Shown here: positions 4,451 to 25,295 of the stretch, one piece after another
How positions within the stretch are numbered: the stretch's first letter is position 1
Layout: each line of letters begins with the position of its first letter
DNA from: Pocillopora damicornis
Taxonomy: Eukaryota
Direction: 5' to 3'
Assembly (NCBI RefSeq): GCF_003704095.1
Contig: NW_020845694.1
Coordinates: 620,001 to 684,000 of the forward strand
Length of the DNA stretch: 64,000 nt
The notes under the pieces: generated by a model
The model's input: only the letters and a program-made list of their open reading frames with translations
The model's database searches: none
What the model was told of the DNA's origin: nothing
Program-made: the position numbers and the translations under genes

Positions 4451-5350
4451 TCATGAGCAATGGAGAGTCTTTCGGCATATTAGAGCGTAAGCATCCCGGA
4501 AGTCACGAATCCTTGCACTGTAGATGATGAAGTTCATGGCTGAATTTGAAAGTGCCAAGGATCGGATCCACATGTAAGCAGTGCCATACATCTTAACAAG
4601 GGATTTACCAGCAGCAAAGAACACGACAATCATCGGCAGCCAACATGCGGTGAAGATAGCTATTACCACTGCCAGTGTGGACGCCACGCGGCGCTCGATT
4701 TTGGAATTAACGACTACTGTGGGTCGTGCTCTGAGTTTATTTTTTCTTCGCTTTTCTTTAACAAGAAAAGTCACGATGGTCGCGTAGCAGATAATTATCA
4801 ACCCATAGCTTATTACAAACATTACGAAGACTAGATAAGATGTCTCCTTAAGGAATGGAATGCGGCATGAAGCGAAAATGATAGATACGACCCAGACAAC
4901 TCCTAACATGATCTTCAAACCAGAACCGTTCATGATCCGTCCATGGCGAAGAGGGTAGACAACGGCAAGGAAACGGTCCACACTAATGGCTGCCAGGTGC
5001 ATGACTGATGCAGAGCACGAGAGGTTTGAGCCGATAACGTAAGCAAGCTCCAAGCTGGATGCACAATCATGGGAAAACGCTCTCTTAGCGACTATAGCAG
5101 CTACCAAAGGCTCGCAGATCATTGTCACTACCAAATCAGCAATGGCCAGGCTGAGAAGAAGGAAGTTGGAGCTGCGACGAAGACGAGTGCTCGTGAGCAC
5201 CGCAATACAAACCATAATGTTTCCACAGGTTCCGACCACGGCTGCTATAGAATTAACTATCATAAGAAGCACGCCATGCGTCTGCGGAAGGACGCAATCG
5301 TCTGCGGAGTCAATTGAAGTATTCGCGCTGTATTCCGAGGAAATATTCAT
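4451..5350 (-). CDS. Class A (rhodopsin-like) GPCR, subtype A copy 1, intronless CDS, 299 aa
   Basis: Seven hydrophobic segments; GN (TM1), SLAIADL (TM2), DRF (TM3), CWLP (TM6), NSAMNFIIY (TM7); splice acceptor tttgtttccAG just 5' of the ATG. Confidence 0.95.
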   Translation of the reverse strand: MNISSEYSANTSIDSADDCVLPQTHGVLLMIVNSIAAVVGTCGNIMVCIAVLTSTRLRRSSNFLLLSLAIADLVVTMICEPLVAAIVAKRAFSHDCASSLELAYVIGSNLSCSASVMHLAAISVDRFLAVVYPLRHGRIMNGSGLKIMLGVVWVVSIIFASCRIPFLKETSYLVFVMFVISYGLIIICYATIVTFLVKEKRRKNKLRARPTVVVNSKIERRVASTLAVVIAIFTACWLPMIVVFFAAGKSLVKMYGTAYMWIRSLALSNSAMNFIIYSARIRDFRDAYALICRKTLHCS

Positions 5351-12406: not shown

Positions 12407-13315
12407 TTACATGCAGTGGAGAGTCTTTCGGCATATCAGGGCGTAAGCATCCCGAAAGTCACGAATCCTTGCACTGTAGATGATGAAGTTCATGGCTGAA
12501 TTTGAAAGTGCTAAGGATCGGATCCACATGTAAGCAGTCCCATACATCTTAACAAGGGATTTACCTGCAGCAAAGAACACGACAATCATCGGCAGCCAAC
12601 ATGCGGTGAAGATAGCTATTACCATTGCTAGTGTAAACGCCACACGGCGCTCGATTTTGGAATTAACAACAACTGTGGGTGGTGCTCTGATTTCATTTTT
12701 TCTTCGCTTTTCTTTGACAAGAAAAGTCACGATGGACGCGTAGCAGATAATTATTAAGCCATAGCTTACAACAAACACCACGAGAACCAGATAAGATGTC
12801 TCCTTGAGGAAGGGAATGCGGCATGAAGCGAAAATGATAGATACGCCCCAGACAACTCCTAACATAATCTTCAAACCGTAACTGTTCATGATCCGTCTGT
12901 GGCGGAGAGGGTAGACAACGGCAAGGAAACGGTCCACACTGATGGCTGCCAGGTGCATGACTGATGCAGAGCACGAGAGGTTTGAGCTGATAACGTAAGC
13001 AAGCTCCAGGCTGGATGCACAATCATGGAGAAACGCTCTCTTAGCGACTATAGCAGCTACCAAAGGCTCGCAGATCATCGTCACTACCAAATCAGCAATG
13101 GCCAGACTGAGAAGAAGGAAGTTGGAGCTGCGACGAAGACGAGTGCTCGTGAGTACCGCAATACAAACCATAATGTTTCCACAGGTTCCGACCACGGCTG
13201 CTATAGAATTAACTATCATAAGAAGCACGCCATGCGTCTGTGGAAGGACGCAATCGTCTGTGGAGTTAATTGAAGTATTCGCGCTGTATTCCAATGAAGT
13301 ATTCTGTATATTCAT
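12407..13315 (-). CDS. Class A GPCR, subtype A copy 3, intronless CDS (ATG at 13315, about 302 aa)
   Basis: Highly similar to 4451-5350 with the same motifs; the ORF-track TTG start lies in the upstream splice acceptor. Confidence 0.95.
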   Translation of the reverse strand: MNIQNTSLEYSANTSINSTDDCVLPQTHGVLLMIVNSIAAVVGTCGNIMVCIAVLTSTRLRRSSNFLLLSLAIADLVVTMICEPLVAAIVAKRAFLHDCASSLELAYVISSNLSCSASVMHLAAISVDRFLAVVYPLRHRRIMNSYGLKIMLGVVWGVSIIFASCRIPFLKETSYLVLVVFVVSYGLIIICYASIVTFLVKEKRRKNEIRAPPTVVVNSKIERRVAFTLAMVIAIFTACWLPMIVVFFAAGKSLVKMYGTAYMWIRSLALSNSAMNFIIYSARIRDFRDAYALICRKTLHCM

Positions 13316-14774
13316 TATTGATTGATTCTGGAAACAAAGCAAAGCTGATGTACAAACCTCTGTCGTTTACTTCCTCAAGAGCCAAACAATTATGGCGTTA
13401 ACTACTAATTCTGTCGAGATATCTAAATATGTTCTTCGCGCGTCAAGGGAATACAGATATTGGAGTTTCAGTTGTTTCACTTTTGCATTTGATAAACGAT
13501 CTTTCCAGTACCTGGACCGTGACGTTAACACTGATCTATGGTCCAAATAAGGCAGGATTATATTGTTTTGATATTGAAAATCACGGGTGACTTTTGCAGC
13601 GAGAAGTAGGCGGGTACAGGGATGGGCAGGAGGGGGACTGGGATGGGCTAGCACTCTTGATGGTGTCTTACGATAATGCTGGATCAATCGAGTCTTCGAA
13701 TACAAGAGATGACACATTAAGACTAATCAAGAAATTTGAAGTTCCTACTATTTCAATTGACTTTTTGTTTGGTGTTGCATCAGATGACAGTGGATTTCCA
13801 TGAGAAAAGAGAGAATCATGCTGAGTAATTTGATATTTTCGCCTCATGACTGGAAGGCTATGGGTCACCAAAAACGTCATGTTACTATTATAGGCCTCTT
13901 AGACCACATAAATATTTTTTTAGTATTATATAGTTCAAGTAAATGAGCTTTTTTGGTAAAAGCTAAAAACCCTGTTTCTCCTTAGCAGCCCTCCGCCTGA
14001 AAATGAAAAGACATTTCAAGGAAAGTTCAATCCAATTTGGCCATTTCTGAGAGTGAGCGGATCCATCGTAAGAGCAAATGGTACGATGACGAAGGCCCAA
14101 AGCTCAAAACGTCAGTTTTAGCAACTCTCACACGCAGTCCCAACTTTTTTTTTCAAGGTCTTTTAAAAGTGTTCCCCACCAGAATGCAACTGAGGAGTTA
14201 AACTTATCTTAGGATTATGAATGGTCTATAAAAGTCGGGTATAGCCGACCACGTGCTGAAATAGAGACTCGAAACTCTTGTTGTTCGTCTAAGAGAAAGT
14301 GCCGGCGGCTGAATTCTCGAGACATGTAAGCATACAACGCGAAGCTGTTGTTTCAGTTTCAGCCATTTTCTATAACTTGATTTCCAAAATTAAACTGATA
14401 TTTTAAAATCAGCAAGTGAAGTTTTGCTTGTACAACTCTCCGCTGTTCGTCCCCTACACAACGAGATGGCCTTTGCCCCATTTTCACCTTAAATATGAGC
14501 AAAATGTGTGCAAAATGGTTGATTCCCTCCAACGCTCACGAAAAAATGGCCGCGACTGATGTCTTCTCTTTCTTACACCGAACGAATAAAAAAAAAAGGA
14601 TGAGAATGTAAGGTTAATGTCAGAAAGTATTGAAAAAGATTTTACTCTATACACACTGAGATTTACCTTGTGAAATCCTACTGTTCGTGTCTCTGATTGG
14701 ACGAACGATGTATTTTCACAGTCGTTCGCTTCGTACTTAAAAGTGTAAATCTCTGTGTGTATAAAATAAAAACA

Positions 14775-14920
14775 TAATACCATGGAAAGTGCACACGAAT
14801 GATTTTTAGTCACTCGTTGCGGTGTATCAAAAAACTCACCCGTTCGCTGCGCTCAGTCGTTCTTTTTTTTCGATTCAACGCTGATTCGTGAATAAAAATC
14901 GTTCGTGCGTACTTTCCAAG
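14775..14920. repeat. Small palindromic MITE-like repeat (second copy about 25530-25672)
   Basis: CCATGGAAAGTGCACACGA...TCGTGCGTACTTTCCAAGG inverted ends. Confidence 0.55.
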
Positions 14921-15996
14921 GATAGACAGATGTGACAGACTTCCCGTGCAACCTCATTAATAAACACATTTGAATGTTTAAAGAATTGGAATAATCAGGT
15001 AAGAGAAACGCGAGCACTATATGAGTGGTTGGCCTGCAGTACTAGGCCTGTATTTGAAAATGGGGAATTAACTGATTGAAGCAACTCAAGTGCTGCGAAG
15101 TCAGACACCTTTCAAATGCCCGATTCAAACATTTTCTAGCCGAGGCTAAGGCATCAATACACTGTGATGTAAAGTTTTGTCACTGTATAATATATGGAAG
15201 GCTTTTCCAGCAACTGAACTACTTATGACTACTGGATACTTGTTACAAGTAATAGGCTTTTTGTGGCAACCTGGGAGAATAGGCCTTTATCAAGGAAAAA
15301 TTGAAAATTGAGTAAGCTGCTGAACAGGCGTATTTAATATTTCATTTTATTTTATCTTTACCCTCTGTACACCTTTCCTTTGCATTTGCAAAGACCAGTT
15401 TGAAGCAAAATTAAGGTTCTTCTACACGCAACCGGATTGCTTTGACATGTTTCAATGCTTCGAATGGAAAAATGCCGAATGGATAAAGTCATTCGCGGTT
15501 TTTTATGTGTTCGAATGCGAGTTACGGTTGACTCATTGCGTTCTTTACATTAATCATTCTCGAGATTTCCAACTGTGAATAGAAAGTAGGATTGATTCGT
15601 GAATAAAAATCGTTCGTGCGCACTTTCCATGTTGATAGCTCACGACACTTGTGACAGACTTCCCGTGCAACCTCATTAATAAACAAATTTGAATGTTAAA
15701 AGGAATAATCATGCTTCGAATGGAAAAATGCCGAATGGATAAAGTCATTCGAAGTTTTTTATGTGTTCGAATGCAAGTTACGGTTGACTCATTGTGTTCT
15801 TTACATTAATCAGTTTCGAGGTTTCCAACTATGAATCGAAAGTAGGAAAATATTTGGATATAATTCATAAGCTTAACATAAGCGTATGATTTTTAATATT
15901 ATTAGAATAAATTGATCATTGCAACTGATCCCTTTACCACAGGACATAATATCAGAAGCTCTACCATACAATAGAACCGGTGTTTGCATTTTCAAC

Positions 15997-16622
15997 TAAG
16001 CAACCGAACATCTTGCGGGATATCGAGATATAGGCATCGCGGAAGTCTCGAATTCTTGCGCTGTAAATAACAAAGTTCATAGCAGAGTTAGAGAGAGCCA
16101 AAGATCTAATTCACATGTATGCTGGACCATAATTTTCAACCAGAGATTTTCCTGTGATGAAAAAAAACATCAACCAACGGAAACCAGCTGACAGAAAACA
16201 AACTGATGATCACAATTGCCAGTGTTAGTGCAACACGCCGTTCGACTTTCAAATTGACATTAATGGATGATTGCGCTCTTAGACGGCCCTTTCGTTTCCT
16301 TTCCCTGACCAAAGTAAGCAATATTGACAAGTAACACACGAACATGAGGGAATAACCAATGGAAAACATTACTGCAGCTAAGTAATAAGTTTTTTTCGGT
16401 AAGAGCTGTCGAACTGTGGCGAATGCAAAAGCGACAACCCACATTGTAGCCAGCATGATTTTCAAGCCATAGTTCTTCATGATCCGACCGTGACGGAGAG
16501 GGAAGGTGACAGCTAAGAGGCGGTCTGTACTGATAGCCACAAGATGCATAAACGACGAGGAACAGCAAAGTTGGCTAAAAGCGAGTAGACGAGTTCAAGA
16601 CTAGGCGCACACTCGTGTAGAA
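15997..16622 (-). pseudogene. GPCR subtype B pseudogene (5' third deleted, frameshifted, stop codon lost)
   Basis: Colinear with 26430-27052; indels in TM6; the TGA stop of the intact copy reads TTA here; homology ends abruptly at 16622. Confidence 0.9.
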
Positions 16623-17200
16623 TAATAACTTTCTTTATATAGTACTCGTATCCTCTGCTAAGACGCTTTACAATCATACAAAATCATACATTATTAATAA
16701 AAATTTACAAATTTACAACCATATCCTACTATATGATACTTAAACATAGCTAAAATTCATGCTGGTTAAAAAAGAAAAAGAAAACTAACGCCAGCCATAT
16801 CTTATGATAGGATACTTAAACATAGCTAAAATTTACAATGATTAAAAAAGAAAATTAAATCTAAAGCAATATATATAAATCTATAAAAATAATGGTCTGT
16901 TATTAATATATTTACTACACAGGAACGTCTTAAGTGCTCTTTTAAAAATTGAGATTGTGTTAGTTTCTGAGCTAAATAGCTAGGCGATGCCCCATTCAGT
17001 GATTTATACACTAGAAGCAGAATCTTGAAAATAATACGGTATTGGATCGGTAGCCAGCGAAGCTTCTGCAAAACAGGTGTGATATGCTGAAACTTACTCA
17101 TTTGACACACAACCCTAGCCGCCATGTTTTGTACATATTGCAATCTTTGTAACTGATACTTAGGCAAGCCATATAATAATGCATTACAAGCATTTGTAAG
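16623..17200 (-). mobile_element. 5'-truncated non-LTR retrotransposon (L2/CR1-like ORF2 C-terminus plus 3' tail)
   Basis: CNALLYGLPKYQLQRLQYVQNMAARVV..FQHITPVLQKLRWLPIQYRIIFKILLLVYKSLNGASPSYL is the typical post-RT region of L2/CR1-clade LINEs. Confidence 0.85.
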
Positions 17201-17322
17201 ATGGCTGAAACTAATTTGTTTCGAAACTATGACGGTCCTATTGTATATTAATACATAAAAACTCGAAGACACAGAGAGAAGCTGTAAGTATCGCAAAAAA
17301 ATATTTCAAAGATTCCAAAGAT

Positions 17323-17497
17323 TCCAACGTAGTGAATTTTCACTCGTTTTATGACTTTGTCTACGGCTGTAACAACGACAGGATAAAGTTTACGGTCGTT
17401 GGTTTTTGTTCTTATCTTCTTCTGAATAAACCCCCCCCCTTGAAAAGACCTCGTCGGAGTATCGTTTTGGGACTCTCCTTTCCCTTGCAGCCGCCAT
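17323..17497 (-). pseudogene. Truncated Tudor-knot/chromo-barrel-like ORF (not in the ORF track)
   Basis: ATG at 17497 in aaccATGGCG context: MAAARERRVPKRYSDEVFSRGG, then a 1-nt frameshift in the G9 run (17431-17439), then FIQKKIRTKTNDRKLYPVVVTAVDKVIKRVKIHYVG; the 'VKIHYVG' strand is a chromo-barrel signature; sequence breaks down after it. Confidence 0.6.
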
Positions 17498-18464
17498 GGT
17501 TACAAATTTAAATTGTTCCTAATGTGATTGATACTCTAATGCGCAAGCGCAGTAGGAAAAAACGTAGTCCGCGCCAGCCTGGACGCCACTTGGAGCAAAT
17601 GTTCGTGCTAATTATGGGAAGTAAGTTTGATATGGTAAAAATTCTCCATTTTAAGTACAGCAGTTTTTACATTAAGAAACTGAAAAGAATAAAAGAATAA
17701 TTTGAAACTGGCTAATAGCAATCAACAGAAAATCAAGTGCCAATGCAAACGCGGAGTTAACGCTTACGTGCAGGTTTTATTAAATGGCCCACAATTTTCA
17801 CGATGAAATACTTTGCGGTCCTTAACATCTAAGCGAGAACAATGAAGCAGTTCTCAATGATAGCAATCTTTTGTTTTTGTCATCAGACCTCATGGTGGAA
17901 GTTAACATTGCTATTAGCCACACGCCGGGGATTTCTGGCGGATTTTTCGGCCACATTATTTTCCAGTTTTTTCCCCGCCGCCATGTTGGCCGTGCGGAGG
18001 TCTGGCGCAAAGCCGGGAAATGATTAACTTTGCAGGCTCTCTATGAACTGTGGTTAAATGAAAGCGCGGTAAATTTGGAACCAACATCTAGATCCTCGCA
18101 AGAGCTTTTATTCAATACCAAACAAGGCGAAATAGGAGAAATATATTTGGTTTTCCCGTGGTTGAAAAGAGGAGACTGTCATGGCGTCGTGAAGCAAAGC
18201 ATATTTTTGAGGCATCTTAAAAAGATTTAAGCTTCAAAATGACAAGACGGCTAGAAGCTAGAGACAAAACTATGGAATCATGCGTTCATTGGTAAGGACT
18301 TCTCCGATTCAGAATTTTTTATTTTTGTCTCGTTTCCTTGATATCTGAACTTTTTAACGACTACCATGACTAGACTTTCGAGCATTTCGAGGTTTACTGA
18401 GCGAGCTACTCTCCCTTTGTCAACAGAATGTGGATTAAGACAGGTTGTAACAGAGTGCAGCGAC

Positions 18465-19239
18465 ATGCCACCAAGAAAAGGACAGAAAAATCGCTTCCCT
18501 TTGAATGAATATCTAGAGATTAAACGGAACCAAGATGCTCTTCTTGTGTCTGCCCTTGCCCGTGATAAAGAGTTTACGAAAAAGGCAAGGAAATTAAAGC
18601 GCCTCGAGTCAAAGGTAAACAACATCGAATATCAAATACTTGAATCTCCTGAACTTGCACGCATACATCTTCAATTGTTGTTAAGAGAAATAAAATATAA
18701 ATCAGAAGGCAGTTAAATTGCCTTTTACCTCTAAATACGTCGAAATGAGCAAATATTTTGGAAATTTCCACGAAATGACTCGTTTTCCTTTGATTTCAGT
18801 TAAACTCGGCTAATACTGTTGTGTTTTAGGCAAAATTGGTGAATGAGGATAACAAAAATGTGAAAGAAAAGGTCAGTACCTTCAATTCATGTGTACTCTT
18901 TTGAATATTATATTCTTGGAGAAAGCTTTCTCATTCCATGCGAACAGTTTATCAATAGAGTAATTTATGATTTACTCTGGCTGTGAAGTTATGCATTGAA
19001 ATAAAACTGAAGATTTGCATGGTCAAAATTTTTTGTCTTCCTCAGATCTCTGTTACAGACAACATTGTAGACAGAAGGACCCGCTCTCCAACAATTTTGG
19101 GAGATGAAGAGAAGATCTCTGGCCCTGGCCGTAACGCTAGACGAAGGAGGCTACAGACATTAAATGCTGCAAAAATGTTGCATGTAGCCACTGCTGAGAA
19201 TATGACACCAGCTTATGCAGGTCTCATAGCAGTTTTGAA
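18465..19239 (+). CDS. 5' exons of the RAG1/Transib-like transposase gene (18465-18614, 18830-18871, 19046 to gap at 19240)
   Basis: Three phase-0 GT-AG exons join to MPPRKGQKNRFPLNEYLEIKRNQD...KRLESK|AKLVNEDNKNVKEK|ISVTDNIVDRR...GRNARRRRLQTLNAAKMLH; the last exon overlaps the start of the copy at 19340. Confidence 0.6.
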
Positions 19240-19339
19240 NNNNNNNNNNNNNNNNNNNNNNNNNNNNNNNNNNNNNNNNNNNNNNNNNNNNNNNNNNNNN
19301 NNNNNNNNNNNNNNNNNNNNNNNNNNNNNNNNNNNNNNN

Positions 19340-20300
19340 TAGATGAAGGAGGCTGCAGACATTAAATGCTGCAAAAATGCTGCATCAAGCCACTGCCAAG
19401 AGTATGACACCAGCTTATGCAGTCTCATGGCAGTTTTGAATGAAAGAGCTTCAGTTTTGGTATTGAGTGATGCAATGATAAAGTGCGCTAAGTTCACAAA
19501 GATAGTTCTTCCTAAAATTGCAAAGCAGGAGATTAATATTTTTGAGAAAAGCCAAACAAATTGTATTAGAAGTGTAAATAATTTGTACAGTGGTGGCATT
19601 GCAAGCAAGCAGAAGTACAATTCAGTAAGGTCATTATTAATGATGTGCTTAGATAATGCTGAGGTTAAAAGGAAGCATATTGAATTCATGAGCAACAATC
19701 CAGTACCTAGACTTCTTTCCCATAAAGAGGTACCTAAAAAGAATGAATCAAATAAACACAGTTGATTTATATCATGTGAGAGAAACACTTTGCAAAGGGC
19801 TCAAGGATGAAGATATAGTTAATGGGAAGTACAGGGACCCAAAGCTAATGTTGAAAATAGCACAGTTTCATCTCAGTGCCAACAATTAGTGGAAAGATAA
19901 GCTTAACTGGTTTGGGACACTAGAGGAAACTTCTAAAGCTGCTATAGGGGGAATAGTACATCCTTTGGAAAGGATGACCAAGCATTGGCTTGGTTAGTTA
20001 GTTTCTTAAACTGTGGTCAGAGTGTGTGTAGCTCTGCAGAGAACTTTCTCTTAATCGGGGCCAATTACTCTGAAGACTGTGAGCCTGTTCGCAGATATGT
20101 GACACTGCTTGAAAGGCAAATGACTGAAATTGAGGGGAAATTGTTTTCAGTAGAAATTGAAGGTATGGAGAAGTTTGTTTCCTTCAATCTGAACTGCTAC
20201 CAAATGACATGAAATACAAATGAAAACACAATGGAGAGAAGGGAGGCAAAGCATGTTACTCTTGCCAAATTTACTAAAGCTATAGAAGCCATAAAATAGG
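19340..20300 (+). pseudogene. Degenerate, internally deleted copy of the RAG1/Transib-like transposase
   Basis: Multiple frameshifts; AIGG[D]..FGKDDQALAWLVSFLNCG (about 19941-20016, first catalytic Asp codon hit by a 1-nt deletion); PNDMK (about 20201) then jumps directly to NTM..REAKH and to the stop region. Confidence 0.75.
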
Positions 20301-21118
20301 TTAAAGGTGGCCTGTAATGAAACAGTTTCTTAGAATTTGCAAACTACAGACAAAAATATAACTTTTTTACTGTTACAATAATGTACTTAATATATGACCA
20401 TTTATGAGATATTCATTATATACCCCTACATACTATGTTAAAAGGAAAAAAACTATAAATGTAGATTATGAATACCTGTGTAATAATTTTTTTAATGTTT
20501 GCAAGAATAATTATTAAAATCAGAGCAAATTGTCAAGGAAAGTTGCTTTCTATCAAATACCTTAGTACCAATTATCATAGGATATGTATCACCTACTAGG
20601 CACATATGTTTGGGGTGCTGAAAGGAAAATTAATTTTGTGTCTCAATTCTCAATAATCAAAATGATTTCCATAGTATCTGAAGAATATTAATTTTATGAG
20701 TGATTCAAATGGAAGCAAATTACCAGTAGCGCATTGAATATCAATATAAAAAGTTTATAGTAATATATAGATATGTATATTTTAGATATATTCAGAGATT
20801 ACAAAAAAAATTTACTATTTCAATTTTTCATTAATATACAAAAATTGCATGCTGAATGTGCTGCCATCAAAAAATATTATTGTCTTAAATGTTACAATTA
20901 TAATAGTTGACTACAAAACTTTAAAAAGATATATGTATATCTAGCTGTCTTTGAGTTCCTTCTCAAAAGAGAACATAAATTTTGAAATATTAAAAATAAT
21001 TATAGCAATGTGTATGTTNNNNNNNNNNNNNNNNNNNNNNNNNNNNNNNNNNNNNNNNNNNNNNNNNNNNNNNNNNNNNNNNNNNNNNNNNNNNNNNNNN
21101 NNNNNNNNNNNNNNNNNN

Positions 21119-22392
21119 TTTAGTAGAAATTGATGGTAAGGAGAAGTTTGTGTCCTTTCAATTTGAACTGTTACCAAATGACATGAAATATTTGGCTTTT
21201 CTAGGAGGAGAACTAAGTATATCTGCCTCTTATTTTTCTCCATTTGCAGACATTAACAAAAAAGACATTGCCAACACTCAAGAAAATTTTGGTTCAAAAC
21301 CACAAGACAAATGGCATCCATAGAAATATTCAAAGACTTAGAGTGGCAGCTGCTGTGAAAGAGAAGAAAGAAGAGGTAAGTAAAACAACTCTGAAACCAG
21401 CCACAAAGCGTGAGAAAATAACATCTTTCATCTCACAGAAAAAATCCAGGCAAGAGTTTCTTCCTTTGGTTGGTAAATTTATTGATAGGGCCAAAGCAGA
21501 ACCCCTTCATTTGAAGAATAATGCTTGGCAACAATGGAATTCATCTGTCTTGATGTATTCTTTGTCACGCAGTCATCTTGGTGAACGTGAGTCTATTTCA
21601 GATGTTTCTCCGAACAGCTGTTTTGGTAAGTATTATCATACCATTAGATTCAATGTGAAAGCAACACGCTTGGCAAAAAAGATCAGGAAGTGGTTTGCAG
21701 GTGACAGAACAAAGAATAAACCCTTGGAATATCGCTTTACAGGTAAAGAGTCGCGTCTTTTTTGTCACAATTTCATGTATATCGTTGAAAGTCTGAAAAC
21801 TGATGAGGATCAGAATGTTCACACTTTCAAGTTACATGTTTTTGCCTACACAGGTTTGAATCTAAGAGATTCAGTCTCGCTTTTTAGTAGGATCTCAATG
21901 TCAAGTGAGCAGGTTCAAAGTCTCAGTCAAGTTTGTTCCAACTATTTCAGAGCTACTGCACTCTTTTTAAAGAGTACCCCTACTTCCTGGACAATTGGCC
22001 ATGTAGTGCCAGTTCATGCCCAGCAACTCCAGGAAACATTAGGTTTGGGCTTGGGAATAAACACAATGGAGGGAAGGGAGGCAAAGCATGTTACTCTTGC
22101 CAAATTTACCAACAATGCCCAGTATAACAACAGATGGAGTCAGGTTTTTAAGCATGAGTACATTTCATTATTCTGGTTACGAGAAAACGGGTGTGATGAA
22201 ACTGTGTACAAACACACTTCAAATGAGTATATACCTAAGAGGTGTTTCACCCATGACTTTTGTTACTGTGGTCTCCCCAAAGATGGTAATGTAGAGAAGT
22301 GTAGTTTTTGTTCCCGGCACTTTCAAAAATTAGTTTCAGACTGTGTTCTTCAAGGGAAAACCACACTTGAAGCTAAAGAGGCAATTAAATAA
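21119..22392 (+). pseudogene. RAG1/Transib/Chapaev-like DDE transposase core and C-terminus (one nonsense codon at 21321 plus a frameshift)
   Basis: FELLPNDMKYLAFLGGELSISASYFSPF (D at 21180), AEPLHLKNNA, KPLEYRFTGKESRLF, GHVVPVH...GLGINTMEGREAKH (E at 22078), C-terminal CYC..CSFC; motif order parallels the RAG1 core. Confidence 0.75.
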
Positions 22393-23084
22393 CTTAAAGG
22401 TGGCCTGTTATGTAACAGTTTCTTAGAATTTGCAAACTACAGACAAAAATGTAACTATTTTATTGTTATGATAATGTACTCAATATATGGCTACTTATTA
22501 GATACTCTTTATATATGCCAACATACAATGTTAAAAGGAAAACAAATTATNNNNNNNNNNNNNNNNNNNNNNNNNNNNNNNNATCAAAGCAAATTGTTCA
22601 AGAAAGTTGCTTTCTATCAAATGCCTTAGTGTCAATTATCATAAAGGATATGTATCATCTACTAAGCACATATGTTTGGAGTACTGAGAGGAACATTAAT
22701 TTTGTCTCAATTCTCAATAATCAAAATGATTTCCAGGGTATTGAAGATATATAATTTTATGAGTGATTCAAATGGAAGCAAATTACCAGTAATNNNNNNN
22801 NNNAGAGATTACAAAAGATAATTTACTATTTCAATTTTGCTATTAATATCCTCTAGTGCATTTAATATCAGTATGAAGAGTTTACAGAAATATATAGATA
22901 TGTATATTATCGATATATACAGAAATTACANNNNNNNNNNNNNNNNNNNNNNNNNNNNNCTATACAAAACGTTGCGTGCTGAACGTATTGCCATCAGAAA
23001 TTATTGTTTTTTTGAATGTTACCATTACAATCGTTGATATTAAAAGTATTATACTATAAGGATTGATCGTAGTTACTGTTCATT

Positions 23085-23741
23085 TCACACATGCTGCGGC
23101 CAGTCATGCTCNNNNNNNNNNNNNNNNNNNNNNNNNNNNNNNNNNNNNNNNNNNNNNNNNNNNNNNNNNNNNNNNNNNNNNNNNNNNNNNNNNNAATATT
23201 TTATTCCAAACTGTTTTTCATAACTTATGATTGCCTCTACGCGCTTGTTGCCTTTGATTTTTCTTTTCAAAAAGGTATTTTTACTCAGGTTTTGATCGGT
23301 ACAATCAGAAAATACCTTTCTCACTCTGTCACGAGAGGTGAAAGCAAACACACAGTTCTTTCGTGTTCGGTCAGCTATAACTCCGAAATTTGTCCTCGAA
23401 ACAATATTNNNNNNNNNNTGAAAAAGCTCTCTGTGCAGCTTCTCCTCCACGACCACCTGCCAAGCGTGTTTGACGGAACATCGTGNNNNNNNNNNTCGCT
23501 GAAATGTCTTAAGCCAATCTATGGCTTGCCTTTGAAACATTGGAAAATAATCTCCCAAGATGTGCTTAAATCCGGTTCGGTTATTGAAGTGTCGAAGCGA
23601 AACTGGTGCAGGCAACCCTCTTATATCATCTAGNNNNNNNNNNATATTATTACTTTGACCATCTTTGCCCGAAAGTTCAGCCTCTGCAACTACAAGCGCA
23701 CCACGAACAGTGTTCAAAAACACTCCACTAGTGTCCGCCAT
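23085..23741 (-). CDS. Uncharacterised ORF (about 200 aa) convergent with the transposase, interrupted by small gaps
   Basis: aaacATGGCG start at 23741; open frame MADTSGVFLNTVRGALVVAEAELSG...VVVEEKLHRELF...IISYEKQFGIKY maintained across four short N runs; 3' end uncertain. Confidence 0.6.
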   Translation of the reverse strand: MADTSGVFLNTVRGALVVAEAELSGKDGQSNNXXXXLDDIRGLPAPVSLRHFNNRTGFKHILGDYFPMFQRQAIDWLKTFQRXXXXRCSVKHAWQVVVEEKLHRELFXXXXNIVSRTNFGVIADRTRKNCVFAFTSRDRVRKVFSDCTDQNLSKNTFLKRKIKGNKRVEAIISYEKQFGIKYXXXXXXXXXXXXXXXXXXXXXXXXXXXXEHDWPQHV

Positions 23742-23904
23742 GTTTCGTTTGAAAAAAGCCAGTTTGAAGTTAGCCGCTGACGCATTACTTGAGCCCGTCG
23801 ATTTNNNNNNNNNNNNNNNNNNNNNNNNNNNNNNNNNNNNNNNNNNNNNNNNNNNNNNNNNNNNNNNNNNNNNNNNNNNNNNNNNNNNNNNNNNNNNNNN
23901 NNNN

Positions 23905-24023
23905 GCTGCTATAGAATTAACTATCATAAGAAGCACGCCATGTGTCTGCGGAAGGACGCAATCGTCTGTGGAGTCACTTGAAGTATTCGCGCTGTATTCC
24001 AATGAAATATTCTGTATATTCAT
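23905..24023 (-). CDS. GPCR subtype A copy 4, N-terminus only (remainder in gap)
   Basis: MNIQNISLEYSANTSSDSTDDCVLPQTHGVLLMIVNSIA matches the other A copies. Confidence 0.75.
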
Positions 24024-24290
24024 TATTGATTGATTCTGGAAACAAAGCAAAACTGATGTGTAAACCTCTATTGTTTACTTCTTCGGGAGTCAAGAAATTA
24101 TGGCGTGATTCCCAATTACTTGTGTGAACTACCAATTCTGTCGAGATATCTAAATATGTTCTTCGAGTGTCAAGGGAATACAGATATTGGAGTTTCAGTT
24201 GTTTCACTTTTGCATTTGATATACGATCTCGAGGGAGACTGGGGTGGGCTGGATCAATCGAGTCTTCGAATACAAGAAATGATGTATTAA

Positions 24291-25295
24291 GAGGGTGGCA
24301 AAGGAGGGGGGGAGGGGTTGCAATCACACATCACGCGAATTTTTCTATTAAATTACGCATCACGGAGGATTTTTTTAACCAATCTCGCGTCACGTAAAAA
24401 AGGAGTAAGTACGCTCAGCTAATACTGTAAGGTTTTTATCCCATCGGATGTATTATTAGAAATTGTATTGCATCCGACGTTTTCCTTCTGGTATGAATTG
24501 CGTTTCACATGACATATTGCTTTTGTTAGACAATAAAGACGACTTACTTGTTAAAACTAGACGCTCCGAGAGCGTTTACTCAGGCTTCGTATCGGAATGT
24601 TAAATCGTACTTTACAAGTATTGAACACAGTAAAAACGAAGAGTCTTGATTTTTTCAACATCTGAGGTGTTCGTCTGGGCATCATAGTCATCATAGTTCG
24701 TTGTTCAAGGAATCAGTAGTCGTAGCTTTGTCAATGTTTCCGTAGTTTGAACTTTTGTATGGTATAATGGTTGTCTCGTGAGAACTAGTATGAACTTTGT
24801 CAAATTGGCTATCTTTCAAGCTGTAGAATTCATGGACTGACCCGTGGACTTTACTACCACGACCACGAGATCGACAAAACTAACACAGAAGGTCATAGTC
24901 CATGTGCAAATTTTAACTTTATTAACTTATGCCTTTTGTGTCACGATTGTTTGGACCTACCGCGAAGATTAAAGACATCCAAGGTCAAGCAAAGCTTAGC
25001 AAAGGACGGAAAAGACCAGAAGACAGTGTCACAACTGCCCTGGTTTATTGATTTTTGTTAAGAGTCTATTTACTTTTAATGTCTGGTATCCTTCTTGGTC
25101 AAAGAGCGTTCACTTATCACGGAAATCTGATTAGTAAGTCTTGTAAATCACGCGTCACGGCTTGTAAAAATAGCAAATCACGCATCATGTTGTGATGTCC
25201 GGTCCCGCATCACGCGGATAATTTGGGTACAATCACGTGTCACCCAGCAAATTTTGGGGCCATCACGCGTCACGCAAAAACCCTTTGCCATCCTC
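24291..25295. mobile_element. Non-autonomous TIR element with GAG...CTC termini (Sola-like)
   Basis: GAGGGTGGCAAAGG at 24291 versus CCTTTGCCATCCTC ending at 25295 (13/14 inverted match); TTAA on the left flank; repeated subterminal ATCACGCRTCACG motifs. Confidence 0.75.

Follow-up and report, generated by a model that had tools for sequence, protein, structure and literature searches.

What kind of gene occupies positions 21,119 to 22,392 of a 64,000-nucleotide stretch of the coral Pocillopora damicornis (assembly GCF_003704095.1, contig NW_020845694.1, forward strand 620,001 to 684,000; hereafter the window), where an open reading frame (ORF) carries motifs in the order known from RAG1, the enzyme that cuts antibody genes? 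An initial reading of the letters (the sequence-only reading) had seen there a transposase that keeps the RAG1 catalytic motifs and lacks the zinc-binding cysteines. What stands there is very likely a transposase gene reduced to its rear two thirds, belonging to a cut-and-paste DNA transposon with two genes, and its product an enzyme of RAG1/Transib architecture from which the zinc site has been lost.

The window is AT-rich and contains numerous N runs, and the transposase is read there in two ORF pieces (Table 1). The shorter piece includes PNDMKYLAFLGGELSISASYFSPF, and the codon for the second catalytic Asp, in PNDMK, is GAC at 21180–21182. All peptide strings quoted by the sequence-only reading were recovered at their positions in the ORF translations, as were the two defects that it named: the TAG at 21321–21323 replaces a Trp present in at least 90% of relatives (W378 of the relative P0001, whose numbering is used below) and the frame changes within about 12 bases 3′ of it. 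Both His of the HxxxxH motif are present in the window copy (GHVVPVH). The first Asp, which had been placed near 19950, was found in part: its context AAIGG....SFGKDD is there, but the Asp itself is not, the codon being ATA with one base missing just after it.

A six-frame search of the coral's own assembly (234 Mb) returned 52 matches, mostly with 27–51% protein identity to the ORF and mostly broken by stops; some of these genome copies (L003, L006, L002) keep long open frames. A word-based protein search with the longest genome copy yielded 321 relatives, typically 700–760 amino acids long, and a precomputed Pfam domain is present in 0/321. The family has no Pfam model, and many coral and hemichordate copies now bear merely the label 'hypothetical protein', as do the few named relatives (Desmophyllum, Dendronephthya, Actinostola, Porites and the hemichordate Ptychodera flava). 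Two alignments were used, one of 28 sequences and a larger one of 102 full-length members. D250 of the GADGAPFGK block is present in 101/102 members, D331 and K333 of the PxDMK block in 101/102, H443 of the EPLHxxNN block (matching RAG1 H795) in 101/102, H614 of the VPxH block in 99/100 and E635 of the GLGxNxM(Q/E)GRE(A/S)KH block in 100/100. The ANCxE block (C288, E290) and the SRQEFxP and RFTG blocks are near-invariant, and the C-terminal CxCG-x(8-10)-CxxC retains C696, C698, C708 and C711 in 96–98 of 98. Conservation of the D, D, E and H columns reaches 99–100% over 102 relatives, so the window motifs are not due to chance; the near-invariance of the D/D/E residues and of the H795 equivalent is in agreement with the sequence-only reading.

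RAG1-like proteins share four conserved zinc ligands, as noted by Martin et al. (PMC7204232). In the hhalign register, the counterparts of the two Cys of the RAG1 ZnC2 domain are positions 350 and 353. Of the 102 members, 92 have S at position 350, 5 have N and 4 have C; at position 353, 75 have A, 22 have G and 3 have S, and a Cys pair at 350 and 353 never occurs. The CxxC loss noticed in the window therefore holds for the whole family and not for the window copy alone. Half of the HxxxxH motif is also gone from the family: position 609, its first His, is occupied by Y, H, V, K or F, and the second His (H614) alone is kept. From the second Asp to the Glu, Cys/His columns are conserved at H443, C587 and H614 alone. 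The new C-terminal Cys cluster that had been pointed out in the window is invariant in the family. This four-Cys tail is placed where invertebrate RAG1-like proteins have Cx2Cx3GHx4C, and the pattern differs. On these alignments, a Cys2-His2 site that is common to all named relatives has been given up by the whole family.

An AlphaFold2 model of P0001, built on the 28-sequence alignment, had a predicted local distance difference test score (pLDDT) of 88.4 and a predicted template modelling score of 0.83. When the model was searched against the PDB with Foldseek, all matches at E ≤0.001 (49/49) were RAG1, the amphioxus protein BbRAGL or HzTransib, with a best E of 4e-12; the first other protein was the P element transposase (E 0.016). 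Structure comparison gave 22.4, 468 and 4.1 for mouse RAG1 459–1005, 19.3, 473 and 4.9 for BbRAGL, 18.5, 424 and 4.2 for HzTransib, and 11.8, 366 and 5.8 for the P element transposase, with about 6 as the first value for Hermes, ISCth4 and PFV integrase. The aligned range of RAG1 covers the dimerisation and DNA-binding domain, pre-RNase H, RNase H, ZnC2, ZnH2 and the C-terminal domain, and the model has this RAG1 arrangement around an RNase H core. In the predicted structure D250 ends the strand 242–250, D331 follows the strand 319–327 and E635 lies in the helix 632–644, positions that would be expected for the counterparts of RAG1 D600, D708 and E962. The assignment to a divergent branch of the Transib/RAG/Chapaev group, made by the sequence-only reading, withstood these comparisons, since the fold match was found and D/D/E is conserved.

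In a protein language-model search with P0001, RAG1_RNase_H clusters scored 0.92–0.95, behind the family's own clusters. As a separate observation, the nearest outside cluster in that search was from Mucoromycota (score 0.97, 560 amino acids) with DUF1280 in 16% of its members; it may represent the zinc-less lineage in a fungal or nematode branch. DUF1280 had no match in Pfam scans of the coral family. The same coral genome also holds a canonical RAG1/Transib-type remnant (L031, contig C3529:1-1840) that the Pfam RAG1 model matches with 82.6, 76.4 and 50.5 bits. This remnant still has its CxxC and its GEGNE motif, and its frame is interrupted by a frameshift and by a TAA. Because it is present, classical and zinc-less families coexist in this coral.

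Intact relatives are elements of about 4.8 kb with CAC-initial inverted ends. The locus encoding P0001 (L056) has a perfect 17-nt inverted pair, CACACTGGGGATTTTTG, at 309–325 and 5082–5098, 4790 bp apart; one contig stops precisely with the right arm, and another (L057) begins within one base of the left arm's first letter. The locus L084, whose protein P0005 is 64% identical, has the same ends 4795 bp apart with AAT/AAT flanks, and L083 retains the right end followed by AAT. In L085 (P0037) the ends are CACGCCGGGCTG with GAA/GAA flanks, and at the P0066 locus they are (C)ACGGCGGGCTGGCG, where the flanks agree with AAT provided that the element has lost a base at one terminus. The target duplication is 3 bp in L084 (AAT) and L085 (GAA), and extension to 4 bp fails in both. 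Five identical copies of the element encoding P0059 (765 amino acids) lie next to different neighbours in one assembly. Inverted repeats, a target duplication and several copies, the hallmarks of cut-and-paste transposition, were all found among relatives; the window itself shows left-end-like sequence only. There the + strand at 17919–17960 reads CACACGCCGGGGATTTCTGGCGGATTTTTCGGCCAC, 110 bases 5′ of exon 1, and its blocks follow the order seen at the left in L056 and L084, two elements with proven inverted pairs of ends; this is probably the left end of the window element. A pattern search for a right end in the window found no match, and this end may sit under the N run at 23805–23903. No inverted repeats of at least 25 nt were found within 17000–24500. 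Across the coral's own genome the end pattern is weakly enriched (56 matches versus 33 in the control). A left-end-like string at 24358 (+) was rejected as a chance match, as about 0.65 matches are expected and its orientation is wrong. One relative carries an insertion: at L085, a long terminal repeat retrotransposon (reverse transcriptase, RNase H, integrase) at 13221–18101 lies between transposase and partner gene, and the element measures about 11.7 kb.

This partner, a convergent gene downstream of the transposase (Table 1), is the second component of the element. The partner proteins of the window and of L056 are similar (BLASTP E 6e-6) and align end to end up to a shared C-terminal ..PQ[FH][IV]. 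A convergent downstream DUF8238 gene is also found in L046, L083, L084, L085 and the five P0059 copies, 4.3 kb downstream in each of the five, and in Ptychodera (L086) as an unannotated tblastn match (E 1e-8). The arrangement is common to the window and seven other lineages, that is, to every element examined, suggesting that this small gene is probably required for transposition or for controlling it. The structure model of the partner has a pLDDT of 52, a protein language-model search gave no usable match, and the Pfam scan of the partner found no chromodomain, kelch or PHD. It does not have the six-bladed kelch propeller and PHD of the RAG2-like partner of RAGL elements. A complex prediction of transposase residues 100–741 with the partner scored 0.00, which is evidence neither way. 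Just beyond the partner gene, at least 5 copies of a short motif, approximately GTGAYGCGTGATT, are spread over 850 bases of the minus strand (24340–25200); these could be subterminal binding sites of this or a neighbouring element.

A layout of cutter plus convergent helper, as in RAG, is thus repeated with a different helper, which bears on the way in which RAG1 became dependent on RAG2. A bolder view is that the family represents a third kind of RAG-like machine, with a RAG1 fold lacking the structural zinc site and in obligate pairing with an unrelated small DUF8238 protein. We put this forward tentatively, as a possibility that we rather doubt. If it is true, a 'cutter plus helper' design with two convergent genes evolved on more than one occasion in the Transib/RAG lineage, or predates the recruitment of RAG2 there.

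Several results count against a RAG1/Transib-type, two-component transposon. The Pfam RAG1 model (PF12940), applied at E up to 10, has no match in the window pieces or in 28 members, although it finds the canonical copy of the same genome. A phmmer search of the PDB and an hmmsearch with the family profile gave noise only. With L031 we fetched 158 canonical relatives, from which 21 long RAG1-like/Transib proteins were aligned, and hhalign of the 28-sequence family alignment against these gave E 0.13, which is not significant; against single pieces of the genome's canonical copy E was 0.13 or worse. In this non-significant alignment DMK is paired with the RAG1-like DEK and YPCSFA with YLCTLC, which is the register of the sequence-only reading. 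The residue equivalences to RAG1 rest on motif order, secondary structure and that alignment. As sequence profiles do not reach RAG1 or Transib, the link to them rests on fold and motif order; the match that had been anticipated by profile or structure came from structure but not from sequence profiles. To our knowledge, structures of CACTA, Mirage and Chapaev transposases have yet to be solved, so the fold match cannot tell an enzyme nearest to RAG1/Transib from one nearest to the whole group. The 3-bp duplication, seen in two clean cases only, does not agree with Transib and RAG-like elements, in which it is 5 bp long, and no binding of the partner to the enzyme came to light in the complex prediction.

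That sequence methods give nothing significant would suit the view that the RAG1 resemblance is a generic RNase H fold combined with chance motifs. The motifs, however, keep their order and spacing, and we give this view almost no credence beside an enzyme of RAG1/Transib architecture.

Where, then, does the family belong? Like RAG1, RAGL and ProtoRAG, it has the motif order D...D(x)K...H...E, ends starting with CAC (as in the heptamer CACAGTG), a second gene convergent downstream and a C-terminal tail bearing a zinc-type Cys motif. It differs from them in having neither the Cys2-His2 site between the inserted domains nor an N-terminal zinc finger or RING, and in its CxCG..CxxC tail in place of Cx2Cx3GHx4C. 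Transib (HzTransib) is a single-gene element in which the CxxC/HxxxH site is conserved and to which no sequence similarity of the coral family can be detected.

The CACTA(EnSpm)/Mirage/Chapaev elements and the wider CMCT clade (Kojima 2025, PMC12730594) resemble the coral family in their CA...TG termini and in target duplications of 2–5 bp, including 3 bp. Membership in a named Repbase group on the CACTA/Mirage/Chapaev side that has no Pfam model (e.g. a Chapaev/Chapaev3 subgroup or Lanisha) would account for the 3-bp duplications and the CAC...GTG ends, both of which are of CACTA type (PMC12730594) and unlike Transib in the length of the duplication. Chapaev transposases, moreover, have been described as only distant relatives of Transib (PMC4411706). 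All named lineages of the clade, however, are reported with C(2)C and H(3-4)H motifs (PMC12730594), and in the coral family the first is missing and the second is down to one His. The defining feature of Chapaev and Chapaev3 is a Chapa (NZD-like) zinc finger at the N-terminus (PMC4411706; bioRxiv 2026.01.24.700457), whereas the coral family is without a Chapa domain: among the 102 members, the median number of Cys in the first ~218 residues is 3, with no conserved Cys/His column, and no such column exists before residue 288. The N-terminus is helical and basic, and this absence of conserved Cys/His columns speaks against Chapaev. The Pfam models for CACTA-type and KDZ transposases had no match in 28 members. 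The first-Asp context DG-x-PF may resemble that of CACTA transposases. On balance we think it unlikely that a named group already includes the family. We file it as a new lineage of the wider Transib/CACTA-Mirage-Chapaev group because it departs from Transib and RAGL in sequence, zinc motif, duplication and partner, and from Chapaev in the Chapa finger; we assign it to none of the named families, and its separation from Chapaev and CACTA, drawn from their descriptions, is provisional.

By analogy with RAG1 and HzTransib, the D of GADGAP, the D of PxDMK and the E of GRE would hold two metal ions, which would nick the CAC-initial ends, with cleavage probably completed via a hairpin. The excised element would then insert with a 3-bp staggered cut. 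The Cys2-His2 site, which holds the two inserted domains to each other in RAG1, in Transib and in the CACTA/Mirage/Chapaev group, has been dropped here, and the invariant four-Cys C-terminal motif is likely a zinc knuckle for contact with DNA or the partner.

The window locus is a decayed, oddly assembled and transcribed copy of such a two-gene transposon. RNA contigs from four studies (four poly(A)-selected runs) represent spliced mRNA with three introns. ATG 18465 is the likely start codon because ATG 18366 is intronic, and exon 3 is skipped in one RNA contig (X20, joint 18612>19044). Identity to the RNA contigs is ~99% over 18029–19228 and 99.4% over 21119–22545, and the contigs pass directly from 20145 to 21119. 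The segment 19340–21018, flanked by two N runs of ~100 bases each, is ~90% identical to the RNA contig (72 differences in 716 bases, 19430–20145). Because of this lower identity between flanks of ~99%, and of the N runs that bound it, we take the segment as a second, older and diverged copy and not simply as the front half of the gene; direct repeats D7, D9 and D10 match this second copy. Frameshifts lie at ~19741 and ~19951 and the first-Asp motif (~19941–19975) is ruined; the tail of the copy has only local matches elsewhere in the genome. The diverged copy either truly lies inside the gene or was put there by scaffolding, so that the locus is rearranged or mis-scaffolded.

Table 1. Coordinates of features at the transposon locus (positions in the window).
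Feature	Positions	Strand	Details
Probable left end of element	17919–17960	+	CAC start, then GGGGATTT, then second GATTTTT..CCAC block
Exon 1, 5′ untranslated	18029–18290	+	RNA contigs; GT..AG joint 18290>18426 in 4/4 runs
Exon 2	18426–18612	+	Likely start codon ATG 18465; splice joints, translation
Exon 3, 42 bases, optional	18828–18869	+	Joints 18612>18828 and 18869>19044 in X16
Start of large last exon	19044–19228	+	Basic N-terminal region, RRRRLQTLNAAK...; ~99% like RNA contigs
Second, diverged, internally deleted coding copy	19340–20300	+	N-terminal part to second-Asp motif, then jump to GRE motif, stop
3′ tail of diverged copy	20301–21018	+	Repeated at 22393–23100; direct repeats, 81–92% identity
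ORF piece with second catalytic Asp	21119–21323 (ORF 21150–21323, 57 amino acids)	+	PNDMK; CxxC-equivalent site YFSPFA; ends at TAG 21321–21323
Main ORF of transposase	21244–22392 (382 amino acids)	+	SRQEF, EPLHLKNN, YRFTG, GHVVPVH, MEGREAKH, C-terminal CxCG..CxxC
EPLHLKNN	21499–21522	+	His codon 21508
YRFTG	21730–21744	+	
GHVVPVH	21997–22017	+	
MEGREAKH	22066–22089	+	Glu codon 22078
FCYCG...CSFC	22258–22311	+	CxCG..CxxC itself 22261–22311
3′ untranslated tail of transposase gene	22393–23060	+	RNA contigs extend beyond 22545; repeat of 20301–21018
Convergent partner gene	23088–23800 (in ORF 23088–24050)	−	PF26709 (DUF8238) label from precomputed table; partly N-masked

The expression of the locus raises the question of whether it is a host gene, or is becoming one, that is kept, spliced and expressed, its breaks being peculiar to an individual or to the assembly. 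At the DNA level the locus is unique in its own genome, its three introns are spliced in poly(A)-selected RNA of all four studies, and the RNA form mends the breaks: in 4/4 runs position 21322 is G (giving TGG) and two extra letters follow 21325, while the contigs of the two runs covering the other site (X16, X20) have one extra letter after 19951. With these three added letters the RNA form measures 2370 letters from start to stop, a multiple of three. However, DNA runs of several samples hold the window's broken version at all sampled words; the broken form is therefore real, and both forms exist, in different individuals or in close species. Transposon genes are likewise transcribed and spliced, a mobile-type terminal sequence is still found at 17919 with the partner gene still alongside, and the contigs cannot show that the RNA form is free of other stops. 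A host role is accordingly improbable in our judgement, and we retain the reading of a decayed transposon copy, which cannot work as assembled because of the stop codon, the frameshifts, the missing or replaced middle and a right end that is not visible.

Judging by loose ends of the RNA contigs, two alternative splices may lead into 21249 (acceptor TTTGCAG). One, from ~21136 (donor GGTAAGG), removes the PNDMK block with the second Asp, and the other, from ~19727, removes the whole front of the catalytic core; the isoforms from both would encode catalytically dead proteins. To the left of the proposed left end, an ORF at 16826–17296 (−) has the C-terminal signature of a non-LTR retrotransposon reverse transcriptase (...LRWLPIQYRIIFKILLLVYKSLNG...), and a 'chromo-barrel' fragment from the sequence-only reading (17323–17497) also lies outside that end.
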